NCBI GenBank assembly: GCA_024704765.1
Contig: JAKMXF010000341.1
Location: 160,596-178,441 of the forward strand
Source of the DNA: Oopsacas minuta
Lineage: Eukaryota; Animalia; Porifera
Reading direction: 5' to 3'
Length of the DNA stretch: 17,846 nt
The position numbers and the translations under genes were made by a program. The notes under the pieces were generated by a model, which made no database searches, was not told the DNA's origin, and was given only the letters and a program-made list of their open reading frames with translations. Positions 1 to 12,323 of the stretch are shown here, piece by piece; the first letter of the stretch is position 1, and each line of letters starts with the position of its first letter.

Positions 1-482
1 GGGCCCGGTACAGTGGTGGAGATTGATGAATCGAAATTTGGGAGACGAAAATATAACCGTGGTAGATTACTCACTGGTCAATGGGTTTCGGTATATATGA
101 GCAAGGTACTGATAACGTTCTGATGATTCAAGTTCCCGATCGCTCAGGTGTGACCCTACTTCACATCATTCAGCGATATGTATTACCTGGAACTACCATC
201 CACTCAGACGAATGGACTGATTATAATGTTGTCCCAGCTGCAGGCTACGATCATCACACTGTGAACCATTCTGAGAATTTTGTGGATCCAATTGACGGTA
301 CCCATACACAAGGGATAGAAAACGCTTGGGGTGTGGTCAAGAAAAGGCAAAGAAGAGGCCAAACAACAAATCCTGAATTGCTAGAATCCCACCTTATCGA
401 GTCTTGTTGGAGAAGAAAGAATAAAGGAAACATCCTAAACAGCATCGTCAAGTGCATTAGAGAATTATATCCTGTTGTGTAA
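1..482 (+). pseudogene. Merlin / ISXO2-like (IS1595 family-related) DDE transposase, 5' part outside window, frameshifted near nt 86-89
   Basis: Frame 1 from nt 1 reads [29 protein letters not shown]. Homology then continues in the -1 frame (ORF 81-482): FGIYEQ...DRSGVTLLHIIQRYVLPGTTIHSDEW...TVNHSENFVDPIDGTHTQGIENAW. EIDE, HSD and IEN are the ISXO2/Merlin DDE motifs. Confidence 0.85.
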
Positions 483-3330: not shown

Positions 3331-4760
3331 TTACTCGTTATCTTAGTTACTAGTTCATTCATTCCATTCTATTCGATCTTTGTCACTCTTAGCCTAATTA
3401 TAGCAATTCATTTCTTACTGTGAATTAACACTAATTGTATGTCATTTAATCGTTTAAGTATCCACTGACCAAACCTGATAGGCCTGGTACTGTACTATGT
3501 GTCGAGATTAATATTAAATATATACTGAGAACAGGTGACTCAACCTTACAGGATACAATGATATTATGAATAGATTATACTGGCATATGACAGTCAGCTA
3601 TTACTACGATACATAGGCGTCGAGTTATTAATTATTTTACCTAAAGCTGACGGGGCACTCGAAATTTTATAATACGTCTCTGATTTTATCTATATTCTAT
3701 ATTCATAGTAGTAAGCATTGAAATAGCATTTACCATGTAATTATTCTGAAGTAAACTGTTTATATTTTCGTGTAAAGCAAGGTTGCAACCAACTAGTCTA
3801 ATATTCGGTTCAAGCGGTTTCAACCTTGGTGTAAAGTAATCAATTATTCTTATTTGTCTTCCGATTCCGCATCCAGAAACATGTTTTCTATAGAGCAAGA
3901 TTTGGAATCTTGGAAGAATAGGTTGTTATTAGAAATTTGGTTATGAGTCTGTGTTTGAAAATAATTTTTCGTTCATAAACAATGTACAAAATTTTGAATA
4001 GCTGGGAGGTCGTAATTCCAAAATCAATTAATACTAATGTTAATAAGTAGTTGAACGAGAATATAAAAAGTATTAGTAATATCGGATGATCGTTATTCTG
4101 AGGTGGTAGTTAAGCGGGATTCCACAATTGGTATACTCGTACAGTAAATTATTGATAAAATATCCGGAAAGTATACTTGTTCTTGATTGAAATAGTCATG
4201 ATTAATAGTCATGATTTCATACTCTGTACATATATATTTTCTGGAATCTTTAACAGAAAGCTGACGGGGCGAAGAGGCCTCCCCCCGTTATGCATACGGA
4301 CTGAAGGAGTGTGCCCCGATCGCCCCCTCATACTCTGCCTATGATACTATATCAGTCTATATGTAGTAAATATGTAAAATATTCTTGAAACGCCAAAATA
4401 ATTTTAATTTTGATACAAGGTTTGTAGGTTTTAAGAAATCTACTACAAAAAGTAATATTTAGAATCACATCTAACTTTGGGACATTTCCAGCATATCAAG
4501 CAAGCATGCCCTCTGCTATTTCTGAGGAATGTAATAGGAGAACCAAATCCTGTAGTATCAAGCAATGGTTCATCTAGGATTCTAGGTGCTTGTCTGGCAA
4601 ATAAAATTCCCAGTTCAGCAGCCAGAAAATTGCCGTCCCACGATTTCCTGGATTAATCCCTGGTGTCAAGTTTAGACATAACAATACTATGATATGATTG
4701 GTTACTACCGAATTAGTGTGTAAAATTTAATTATTAGAACTTATTACTAGGATCTAAGCT

Positions 4761-4895: not shown

Positions 4896-5417
4896 TCTTT
4901 GTTATTTAGTTTATAAAATTATGGCAGAGTAAAATAGTTAGTGAATTGCTAGGAACAAATATTTTCATGCTCTTATACTAGCAGACCTGTCCGAGCTGCC
5001 AGCTCTCACCGATTCTCGCGGCCTAAAGATGAATTATCACGTTTTGCTCCTTATACGAAAATATTTAAATACTATTGAGCACTGAGCCTTAAGATATAAG
5101 GAAAATAAATATTATACCTAGAAACAGAATTCAATGTTAAGAGACTTAATCAATATACTATAGTACTAACAGTTATAGAAAAGTTAATTCATTGGCGTTC
5201 TAAATCCAATCAACTAACAGTACCATAGAAACCAAATGTAATTTCATTGATTTCGTGTTATAGCCTTCTATCTTTATGTAATGGAGCTTGTATGGTTCTT
5301 CTAATTTCAATTGTTGTACTGACTGTCCAGGCTAGGTACGCTGATTACAAATATGAATTTATCACCAACGTATTTATTTGTGAATATTTTGCTACTTTTA
5401 TCCCATACTCGGATACC

Positions 5418-5445
5418 GACAATTCGCACCACGACAATTCGCACC
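5418..5445 (+). repeat. Left subterminal array, 2 x GACAATTCGCACC (15-bp period)
   Basis: Copies at 5418-5430 and 5433-5445. Confidence 0.9.
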
Positions 5446-5449
5446 TAAT

Positions 5450-6160
5450 TTGATTGGCCTACTGTGTCCACTTGCCCAGCCTCAACAGATGCTCCTGGAC
5501 TTTGAGAAGGGCCCGATTACCAGCTTTGAGCATGTCTGGCCTAACACAGTAGTGAAGTGCTGCTTCTTCCACCTCACACAGAATATCTGGCGACATGTGC
5601 AGTCTGTAGGGCTGCAGTCTGCCTACACACATGACGAAGAGTTGGCTATGTGCATCCGGAGGATACCAGCCCTTGCTTTTGCCCGACCAGCAGACGTACA
5701 CGATCTGTTTGATCAAGTGGCAATGGACCTCCCCCTTACGTCTGAGATAGGCGAACTAGTCGACTACTTTGAGAGGACGTATATCGGTCGCACGCTAGCC
5801 AGTGGATACCATGTAGCGGCGACGTTCCCCATCGACCTGTGGAACTACCACCTCAGCACGCCCTTCGGGCTCCCCCGTACAACCAACGCCGTGGAGGCAT
5901 GGCACCACAGCTTCAATGCCACTGTCGGCTGCCATCACCCCACCATATGGAAGTTCCTCCTAGCCCTCAAGCGTGAGCAGGGCCTAGTGGAGGTGCGGCA
6001 TACTAACTACCTCGTTGGCAAGCCACCAACCAAGCGAAGGCGGTCCAAACAGAGTGAGGAAGCGTTGAAGACTCTAGTTCGTGAATATTATTCTCAAGAT
6101 CGTTCTAAAATGGAGTTCTTGCAGGGTGTAGCACATCATTTCAGTCTGGGAGCCGATTAA
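5450..6160 (+). pseudogene. MULE (Mutator-like) transposase, C-terminal part only
   Basis: Contains LLDFEKG (second catalytic D), CCFFHLTQNIW (CxxH motif) and RTTNAVEAWHHSFN (catalytic E). It lacks the first catalytic D and the N-terminal DNA-binding region. The ORF start is a TTG next to the repeat array. Confidence 0.85.
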
Positions 6161-6228
6161 CATGTTAATCTAAAGGATTATCTCTAATCAATGTATTTGA
6201 GGGCTAGATAATCCTTTAGATTAACATG

Positions 6229-6939
6229 TTAATCGGCTCCCAGACTGAAATGATGTGCTACACCCTGCAAGAACTCCATTTTAGAACGATCTTGAGAATA
6301 ATATTCACGAACTAGAGTCTTCAACGCTTCCTCACTCTGTTTGGACCGCCTTCGCTTGGTTGGTGGCTTGCCAACGAGGTAGTTAGTATGCCGCACCTCC
6401 ACTAGGCCCTGCTCACGCTTGAGGGCTAGGAGGAACTTCCATATGGTGGGGTGATGGCAGCCGACAGTGGCATTGAAGCTGTGGTGCCATGCCTCCACGG
6501 CGTTGGTTGTACGGGGGAGCCCGAAGGGCGTGCTGAGGTGGTAGTTCCACAGGTCGATGGGGAACGTCGCCGCTACATGGTATCCACTGGCTAGCGTGCG
6601 ACCGATATACGTCCTCTCAAAGTAGTCGACTAGTTCGCCTATCTCAGACGTAAGGGGGAGGTCCATTGCCACTTGATCAAACAGATCGTGTACGTCTGCT
6701 GGTCGGGCAAAAGCAAGGGCTGGTATCCTCCGGATGCACATAGCCAACTCTTCGTCATGTGTGTAGGCAGACTGCAGCCCTACAGACTGCACATGTCGCC
6801 AGATATTCTGTGTGAGGTGGAAGAAGCAGCACTTCACTACTGTGTTAGGCCAGACATGCTCAAAGCTGGTAATCGGGCCCTTCTCAAAGTCCAGGAGCAT
6901 CTGTTGAGGCTGGGCAAGTGGACACAGTAGGCTAATCAA
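6229..6939 (-). pseudogene. Second, inverted copy of the same MULE transposase fragment
   Basis: The translation is identical to the + copy except Gly/Ser at the third residue (IGLLC vs ISLLC). Confidence 0.85.
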
Positions 6940-6943
6940 ATTA

Positions 6944-7017
6944 GGTGCGAATTGTCGGTGGTGCGAATTGTCGTGGTGCGAATTGTCCCGGTGCGAATTG
7001 TCGTGGTGCGAATTGTC
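6944..7017 (-). repeat. Right subterminal array, 5 x GACAATTCGCACC on the minus strand
   Basis: GGTGCGAATTGTC occurs at 6944, 6960, 6975, 6990 and 7005. Confidence 0.9.
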
Positions 7018-7025
7018 GGTATTCC

Positions 7026-7078
7026 TTTTATACTTGCTCAATTCGAACACAAAGTGTTCGCAAGCGAAGCGCACTAGT
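7026..7078 (+). mobile_element. Possible Helitron-type 3' end or short non-autonomous relic
   Basis: A hairpin CGAACAC-aaa-GTGTTCG (7044-7060) is followed by GCGAAGC (7064-7070) and CTAGT (7074-7078). Hairpin plus CTAG is the usual Helitron 3' signature. No 5' end was identified. Confidence 0.3.
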
Positions 7079-7402
7079 TTTTAATTATATTTGATCTAAA
7101 ATACTAAATTTAGCTTAATACTAGTTTACAGCTATTAATCATTGACCGTATTATTAATTCAAATTCCTAGAAGCTCTTTCAACAAATTTCAACTCTCACT
7201 TTTCAGATTCTGACATATTAGGCCATTATTTGGCTACATAGTATTCCTATTTATTACTATTCAGTGGTTGTCATACGAACTCCATATGATGCTATAACAA
7301 TAGACCACCACACAATGATGCAGGATTGGAACAATATAAATTCTGGTAGGCTGTTCAGTCTATACAAACTAGTAATACGATATCAGTGGAGTATATTCTA
7401 TA

Positions 7403-7864
7403 ATGGCAAGCAGTGGTTCGCATGGATTAAGCAAGGAACAAGTGGAAGAGTTCAAAGAAGCATTTGCATTGTTTGACAAAGATGGAGACGGGTCCATCAC
7501 TACCAGAGAGCTGGGTACCATCATGCGTTCTCTCGGTCTGAATCCTACAGAGGCTGAACTACAGGAAATGATCAATGAAGTGGATCTAGATGGAAACGGT
7601 ACGATAGACTTCACTGAATTCCTTGGTATGATGTCAAAGAAGCTGACTGAGCCTGATTCTGAGAGAGACATCCGAGAAGCCTTCAAAGTGTTCGACAAGG
7701 ATGGAAATGGGTTCATATGCGCGGGAGAGTTGAGACACGTGATGACTAATCTAGGGGAGAAGCTCACGGACGAGGAGGTAGATGAAATGATCAAGGAGGC
7801 AGACATTGATGGAGATGGACATATTGACTTTAAAGAGTTTATGTCTATTCTAACTAACAAATAG
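7403..7864 (+). CDS. CALM: Calmodulin / calmodulin-like paralog, 153 aa, four intact EF-hands, intronless
   Basis: The EF loops [36 protein letters not shown] and [12 protein letters not shown] all keep Glu12. [15 protein letters not shown] and [22 protein letters not shown] match calmodulin. The linker and termini diverge from canonical animal CaM. Confidence 0.93.
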
Positions 7865-12144: not shown

Positions 12145-12323
12145 AATATAATATAATATAATGTAATGTAATGTAATGTAATGTAATGTAATGTAATGTA
12201 ATGTAATATAATGTAATGTAATGTAATGTATGTAATGTAATGTAATGTAATGTAATGTAATGTAATGTAATATAATGTAATGTAATGTAATGTATGTAAT
12301 GTAATGTAATGTAATGTAATGTA
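12145..12323. repeat. (ATGTA)n pentanucleotide microsatellite with a 64-bp higher-order duplication
   Basis: About 36 units. The variant ATATA occurs at 12206 and 12270, and the 4-nt unit TGTA at 12231 and 12295. Confidence 0.97.

Follow-up and report, generated by a model that had tools for sequence, protein, structure and literature searches.

A palindromic transposase unit in the sponge Oopsacas minuta as a probable copy of a dispersed MULE transposon with Foldback-like ends

The stretch of DNA studied here (hereafter the window) comprises 17,846 nucleotides of contig JAKMXF010000341.1 (positions 160,596 to 178,441, forward strand) from assembly GCA_024704765.1 of the glass sponge Oopsacas minuta, and contains an almost perfect palindrome made from the coding sequence of a MULE transposase. 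An earlier reading, based on the letters alone (the sequence-only reading), had likened this palindrome to the Mu killer locus of maize, i.e. to an inverted duplication whose read-through hairpin RNA silences intact transposons in trans. The locus raises the question of whether the palindrome is a unique silencing locus or one member of a mobile family. We found that the whole unit, from 5410 to 7025, is a transposon with its own ends. We consider, with a probability of about 85%, that it is a copy of a multi-copy, non-autonomous FLYWCH+MULE (Phantom-type Mutator) transposon with Foldback-like ends, whose palindrome was inherited.

Palindrome, coding arms and termini

Repeat finding delimited two inverted arms of 752 nt each (5432-6183 and 6206-6957) on both sides of a 22-nt spacer (6184-6205), and reading of the sequence located their sole mismatch at 5456 (G) versus 6933 (T), in agreement with the tail-to-tail layout first described from the letters. 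From the outside inwards, each arm starts with 26 nt of the terminal repeat (5432-5457 on the left), continues with a coding part of 703 nt (5458-6160 on the left) and closes with 23 nt beyond the stop codon. The G+C content of the palindrome region is 47-56%, against 30-44% in its surroundings. A scan of 5200-7300 with Rfam gave no match.

Each arm encodes the C-terminal 234 codons of a FLYWCH/MULE transposase, with a stop at 6158-6160. The 236-aa open reading frame (ORF) of the arm aligns with the Pfam MULE domain (PF10551) at profile positions 64-99 of 99 only, and its score of 20.9 bits is below the cut-off (27.6 bits) because the domain is truncated in the arm. As the sequence-only reading had it, the first catalytic Asp is missing: it belongs to the motif LADGTF, seen in two longer relatives (L008 and L009, described below), which lies upstream of the arm stretch and so outside the arm. 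The arm does contain the second Asp (LLDFEKG) and the Glu (NAVEAWH). An exhaustive HMMER search with the arm protein retrieved 8384 library proteins at E<=0.001. The full-length relatives are proteins of 450-690 aa with the FLYWCH+MULE architecture, and the arm query covers their last ~230 residues. FLYWCH+MULE was seen in distant full-length relatives: the whole MULE domain scored above the cut-off in P0001, P0008 and P0009, and FLYWCH was found in the full-length proteins P0005, P0008 and P0009. The window copy is devoid of the FLYWCH part.

Beyond the arms, the unit extends on each side through subterminal tandem units to a terminal 8-mer, and is flanked by two target-site copies (Table 1). 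The inner part of the terminal repeat, TAATTTGATTGG, is joined to CCTACTG of the transposase gene; the same motif in L008 runs on with TCAATT. Undisrupted paralogues of the short repeat surrounding the element read GCTAC-TTTTATACT-T... in read contigs, and the original target was therefore TTTTATACT, the left copy having gained 5 nt later.

Dispersed copies, longer relatives and known systems

The short unit, with identical mirror-image deletion junctions, is present at at least five further O. minuta loci with 96-99.5% identity. Three of these copies are full length (L003, L004 and L005) and two are partial (L006 and L007), and the neighbouring genes differ at each locus. All the short copies (6/6) have one GGAATACC end (A) and one CGGATACC end (B), which directly abut the target-site duplication in the complete copies. 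This duplication is a perfect 9-bp repeat in L003 (CCCCTACTT), L005 (ACAAGAAGG) and L007 (CACTTAACC), and is imperfect in L006 (8/9 matching) and in L004 (8 bp). The number of 15-bp units varies from 1 to 27 per end and differs between the two ends of one copy. The junction TAATTTGATTGG|CCTACTG was found on both sides in four complete copies, once in the one-armed L007 and, each time with one nucleotide inserted, at the two corresponding places in L004; it was not found in the longer relatives examined. Being common to the short copies and absent from these longer relatives, it indicates that the short family has one origin and was transposed as a unit. The idea of a Mu killer-like single rearranged locus consequently has to be abandoned, the same unit being found with its junctions and its own duplications at at least five other loci.

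The two partial copies are of different kinds. In L006 (JAKMXF010000334.1), a run of ~530 N replaces most of the second arm and is a sign of difficulties of the assembler with these palindromes. L007 (JAKMXF010000310.1, positions 6405-7679 of this locus) has lost its second arm from the spacer down to the terminal repeat and includes an array of 27 15-mer units. The annotation merges its arm ORF with a saccharopine dehydrogenase gene in model LOD99_7689, which is probably an annotation chimera.

A protein search with the arm retrieved many O. minuta proteins annotated as "MULE transposase domain-containing". The 223-aa arm ORF belongs to a 90% cluster of 11 proteins, several of which form adjacent locus-tag pairs (LOD99_522/523, 6136/6137 and 318/319). 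Three runs of one sample showed an even flank depth across genes and spacers and are therefore probably DNA. The summed contig depth within the element is ~100-700 times the flank depth in these three DNA-like runs; this ratio is not a copy number, and suggests the order of a hundred related arms in the genome. Such abundance agrees with the 15.4% of DNA transposons given in the O. minuta genome paper.

Longer relatives of 4.4-5.5 kb already hold a tail-to-tail palindrome of the transposase gene, and have in common with the window unit their termini and a palindrome centre located ~34 nt past the stop codon. The palindrome is thus an inherited body plan of the family, and did not originate here. 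In the 5.5-kb element L008, the inner terminal repeat is the same and the duplication of 9 bp reads CTTTTCCAA. The arms of its palindrome measure 1279 nt and are separated by 26 nt, and over the full 1476-nt core L008 is 95% identical to the window element. It has one A end, while the opposite end starts GCACCACC, and an ORF located beyond one arm, upstream of the MULE part, contains a FLYWCH domain (PF04500, 25.1 bits for a cut-off of 23.6). L009 (1333-nt arms) and L001 (~1290-nt arms) are both 87% identical to the window element, and their alignment with the window continues through the centre, with a recognisably homologous spacer. An L009 ORF contains the whole MULE domain above the cut-off (34.5 bits), and the A-type and B-type ends of L009 are each paired with a different subterminal sequence. 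The window element corresponds to such a parent minus both sides, with cut points each 737.5 nt from the centre. An independent and recurrent formation of palindromes was considered and is unlikely, as the short copies have one junction pair and the long relatives have the same centre and spacer sequence.

Within its 2.3-kb unique left part, L008 also carries an ORF (3799-4464) with mariner-type helix-turn-helix domains (HTH_48 and HTH_32), which is either a nested insertion or a captured sequence.

The short element was probably derived from a long parent by deletions at mirror-image points. By one route, a deletion on one side would have been copied onto the other arm by conversion, using the terminal repeat as homology outside and the arm as homology inside. 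By a second route, gap repair would have involved a nascent strand that turned back along the palindrome and took its own junction as template. As the A and B ends are still unlike at their extremes, the symmetrising process must have halted within the terminal repeat. The resulting short element would be moved in trans by a family transposase recognising the termini and the 15-mers.

Related elements were also found in other assemblies. L010 (4657-5803; ENA ERZ20067936, a long-read assembly) has the same termini and 15-mers and a 9-bp duplication (GAGACAAGA), and its coding part is a single, non-palindromic C-terminal fragment with 70% amino acid identity. L011 has Foldback-like ends built from a different 15-mer and a single ORF. 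As L010 and L011 are non-palindromic, not all members of the wider lineage have the palindrome. L012 (7016-7341; ENA ERZ25072740) has related ends and an inverted second copy located 160 nt past the 3' part of the MULE ORF; only 83 nt of this second arm are visible before the contig end, and the plus-strand copy has an internal deletion close to its 3' end. The host gene of L012 is 61% identical to the best O. minuta protein, which indicates a different, sponge-like species, and the tail-to-tail layout may be older than the O. minuta family. As a separate observation, the termini and 15-mers of L010 are near-identical to those of O. minuta, the ends being far better conserved than the gene.

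With respect to known systems, the MULE domain, the N-terminal FLYWCH (in relatives) and the ~9-bp target-site duplication are those of Phantom elements of the Mutator/MULE group, and the variable number of tandem units in the terminal repeats and the short asymmetric end motifs are those of Foldback/Tm1-like elements. In Tm1 of Meloidogyne, the terminal motifs are asymmetric, the tandem repeats are 13-15 bp long and vary in number, the duplications are of 9 bp and the transposase is of the Phantom type; the end architecture of the O. minuta family matches it almost point for point (Gross & Williamson 2011, PMC3169594). The likeness extends to tandem-unit numbers unequal between ends and copies, to a ~460-500-aa FLYWCH+MULE transposase in autonomous relatives and to many non-autonomous derivatives. 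However, the O. minuta family holds a gene-derived palindrome between its ends, reduced in the window to two mirrored C-terminal halves, whereas Tm1 derivatives contain unrelated inserts (a histone hairpin) or resemble miniature inverted-repeat transposable elements. The Foldback elements of Drosophila (FB and FB-NOF) are likewise known for long inverted repeats, variable internal tandem repeats, instability and a link with a MULE-type protein (NOF). Their arms are non-coding repeats, whereas the O. minuta arms are transposase coding sequence.

Arm similarity and the effect of assembly

Over 726 nt, the two arms of one copy differ at 0 sites in the window, 2 in L003, 1 in L004, 5 in L005 and 5 in L008, and at 19 and 36 sites in L009 and L001, respectively. 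Between copies, the differing sites number 34-37 for the window versus L008 and ~90-110 for the window versus L009 and L001. In the four complete short copies, nine variant occurrences are mirrored on both arms versus eight found on a single arm; among the mirrored ones are a 15-bp deletion private to L005, a single inserted nucleotide in L004 and, in the window, a private C>A at 6047 (partner 6342). Read with the A end on the left, the spacer is CTAATCAATGTATTTGAGGGCT in L004, L005, L006, L008 and L009, and the reverse complement in the window, L003 and L007. As this orientation is incongruent with shared single-nucleotide polymorphisms, at least two flips are needed. The alike arms, the mirrored variants and the two loop orientations suggest arm-to-arm recombination: conversion between inverted arms would homogenise them, and crossing-over would flip the loop. 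Repeated fold-back re-symmetrisation and gene conversion fit these data alike.

Large palindromes, for example those of sex chromosomes, are kept alike by arm-to-arm gene conversion. The family resembles them in its arms, more alike within than between diverged copies, in its mirrored variants and in its invertible spacer. It differs from them by its 1.5-kb scale and its position within a mobile element, and also because an assembly of this type can itself symmetrise palindromes. Indeed, the O. minuta assembly was produced with hybrid SPAdes (Illumina and corrected PacBio continuous long reads), SSPACE, Pilon and GapFiller (PMC10280926). With such methods, both arms correspond to the same edges of the de Bruijn graph, the path through the loop may run in either direction, and polishing with multi-mapped reads corrects the two arms in the same way, so that the observed pattern is possibly in part method-made. 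The contrast between 0-5% divergence within copies and 12-15% between lineages is harder to explain by the assembly method.

Several points weigh against the interpretation of the window unit as a mobile copy with an inherited palindrome. The assembly method could partly create the near-perfect arm identity, the mirrored variants and the loop orientation. Logan short-read contigs end at the element borders and bridge neither the element nor its centre. The target-site duplication of the window copy is imperfect, and mobility rests on the copies and their duplications, not on a polymorphic empty site. Finally, none of the sampled copies was found to encode an intact full-length transposase, L008 being interrupted and the L009 ORFs ending at 294-296 aa.

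The first two of these points, together with the N gap in L006, would also fit an assembly artefact, in which the real insertion is one-armed like L007 and the palindrome was threaded from family members, or in which a chimeric long read folded back. We hold this explanation to be very improbable. The same structure is found with individual differences at several loci, with proper termini and duplications; the numbers of tandem repeats are unequal at the two ends, and one arm mismatch and single-arm variants were kept. Moreover, the assembler does yield a one-armed form where such a form exists (L007), and a tail-to-tail second copy also occurs in L012, from the long-read assembly of a different species.

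The window copy is itself nested in another short repeat (5335-5409 and 7026-7065), which has at least 7-8 paralogues in read contigs, diverging at 5335 and 5374 and rejoining at 7044-7065; none was found when paralogues were sought among the other loci examined. Read-contig depth rises ~10-fold across 5270-5363. The joints 5374>7044/7045 were considered as a possible empty allele and rejected, since 7-8 different contigs diverge there with only ~80% agreement, as would be expected of paralogues of a short host repeat.

Hairpin RNA, neighbourhood and significance

The computed fold of a hypothetical RNA across 5446-6943 is one uninterrupted hairpin (-1621 kcal/mol). The proposal that an inverted duplication of a deleted MULE gene could give a duplex of ~750 bp in RNA is supported by this fold, while the core of the Mu killer analogy is not. 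Mu killer occupies a single locus, in which one terminal inverted repeat is present twice together with the 5' part of mudrA, and its transcription, its small interfering RNAs and the dominant heritable silencing that it causes have been demonstrated (PMC3440606). The O. minuta unit resembles it in being an inverted duplication of part of a Mutator-superfamily transposase gene, from which read-through would yield a long hairpin RNA. It differs in that it duplicates the 3' catalytic half (a distinction already drawn by the sequence-only reading and confirmed by the arm content), in its two distinct ends, its duplications and its many copies in place of a single rearranged locus, and in a palindrome that is ancestral to the family. 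A search of runs for the sequence returned four DNA-like runs of one sample and two weakly matching runs from another organism, and no RNA run.

Dicing of a read-through hairpin, followed by RNA interference (RNAi) against the family, would be plausible. The corresponding explanation is that a transcript from a flanking promoter is diced and that its small RNAs silence intact family members in trans, as for Mu killer, the locus or all the short copies being kept for taming the family. Although compatible with mobility, this explanation appears unlikely to us. The perfect hairpin speaks for it, as do arms spanning the catalytic C-terminal half with 87-95% identity to the longer elements and the location of the element between two plus-strand genes, which makes read-through conceivable; Mu killer is by definition a duplication of this kind, partial and inverted, with read-through coming from a flanking gene (PMC3440606). 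Against it, the element is dispersed and its palindrome is ancestral to the family, in contrast to a unique rearranged locus. The family is abundant with copies only 0.3-0.8% apart, unlike an effectively silenced family, and the gene models on the arms required no transcript support. Unlikely as well is the broader proposal that the tail-to-tail palindrome is a heritable and actively symmetrised built-in hairpin-RNA module limiting the family, with the short derivatives as mobile equivalents of Mu killer, the first in an animal. If this were true, the tail-to-tail hint of L012 would make the hairpin module an old, conserved feature.

Repression might also operate at the protein level. Truncated transposases poison transposase assemblies in other families, and the 223-aa ORF, without the DNA-binding domain and the first Asp, could act in the same way. 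Both arms, and several copies, keep this ORF intact, and among O. minuta lineages the ratio of non-synonymous to synonymous substitution rates (dN/dS) in the arm coding region is 0.35-0.5; in the comparison with L010 it is 0.16. However, in copies of such a young age frames should be open even in the absence of selection, and these dN/dS values are what selection on a working transposase would leave, i.e. a signal from the parent. The repressor hypothesis has in our view very little chance of being correct.

The mobile element of the window lies ~2.1 kb downstream of the AdoHcyase gene and 378 nt upstream of the calmodulin-like ORF, both on the plus strand (Table 1). The AdoHcyase ORF has no intron and matches contig JAKMXF010000341.1 of GCA_024704765.1 exactly. 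The gene neighbourhood is compact and seemingly intron-poor. The window also contains a fragment of a different transposon family, a 133-aa ORF at 81-482 (+) with an IS1595/ISXO2-like DDE domain (PF12762, 68 bits), and an (AATGT)n microsatellite at 12145-12323 (~36 units, very AT-rich, GC 0.22).

Table 1. Coordinates of the transposon parts and of the neighbouring ORFs in the window
Feature	Position	Strand	Remarks
AdoHcyase ORF, 430 aa	2038-3330	+	uninterrupted
Left target-site copy, degenerate	5396-5409	.	TTTTATCCCATACT = TTTTATACT + 5 extra nt
Terminal 8-mer, "B" end	5410-5417	+	CGGATACC
Two 15-bp subterminal tandem units	5418-5445	+	GACAATTCGCACCAC type
Inner part of terminal inverted repeat	5446-5457	+	TAATTTGATTGG; ends at deletion junction
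Left arm, coding part	5458-6160	+	C-terminal 234 codons; ATG-started ORF 5489-6160, 223 aa
Post-stop stretch, still left arm	6161-6183	+	23 nt
Non-palindromic spacer (loop)	6184-6205	.	22 nt; inverted relative to longer parent elements
Right arm, mirror of 5458-6183	6206-6931	-	ATG-started ORF 6229-6900; 0 differences over 726 nt
Inner part of terminal inverted repeat, right	6932-6943	-	includes 6933, the one position at which the arms differ
About five 15-bp subterminal tandem units	6944-7017	-	repeat finding
Terminal 8-mer, "A" end	7018-7025	-	GGAATACC on minus strand
Right target-site copy	7026-7034	.	TTTTATACT
Calmodulin-like ORF, 153 aa	7403-7864	+	uninterrupted
RING + DUF1232 protein ORF, 267 aa	9738-10541	+	uninterrupted
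Second EF-hand protein ORF, 169 aa	14424-14933	+	uninterrupted

With the window unit being an ordinary copy of a repeated element, the specific claim that an animal has a natural Mu killer locus loses force. More unusual is a Foldback-like MULE family whose inverted repeats include its own transposase gene and which has mirror-symmetric deletion derivatives; the arms of this family appear to evolve in concert and the loop appears to flip. In practical terms, the O. minuta gene set annotates these palindromes as pairs of "MULE transposase domain-containing" genes, and in at least one case includes them in a host gene model (LOD99_7689), and such models are best treated as transposon fragments. 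If long reads confirm these patterns, the family would be a small natural model in which to study how a palindrome is maintained within a mobile element. Small RNAs mapping to the arms, if found, would make it a case of transposons that bring along a trigger of RNAi against themselves, in an animal of an early branch.

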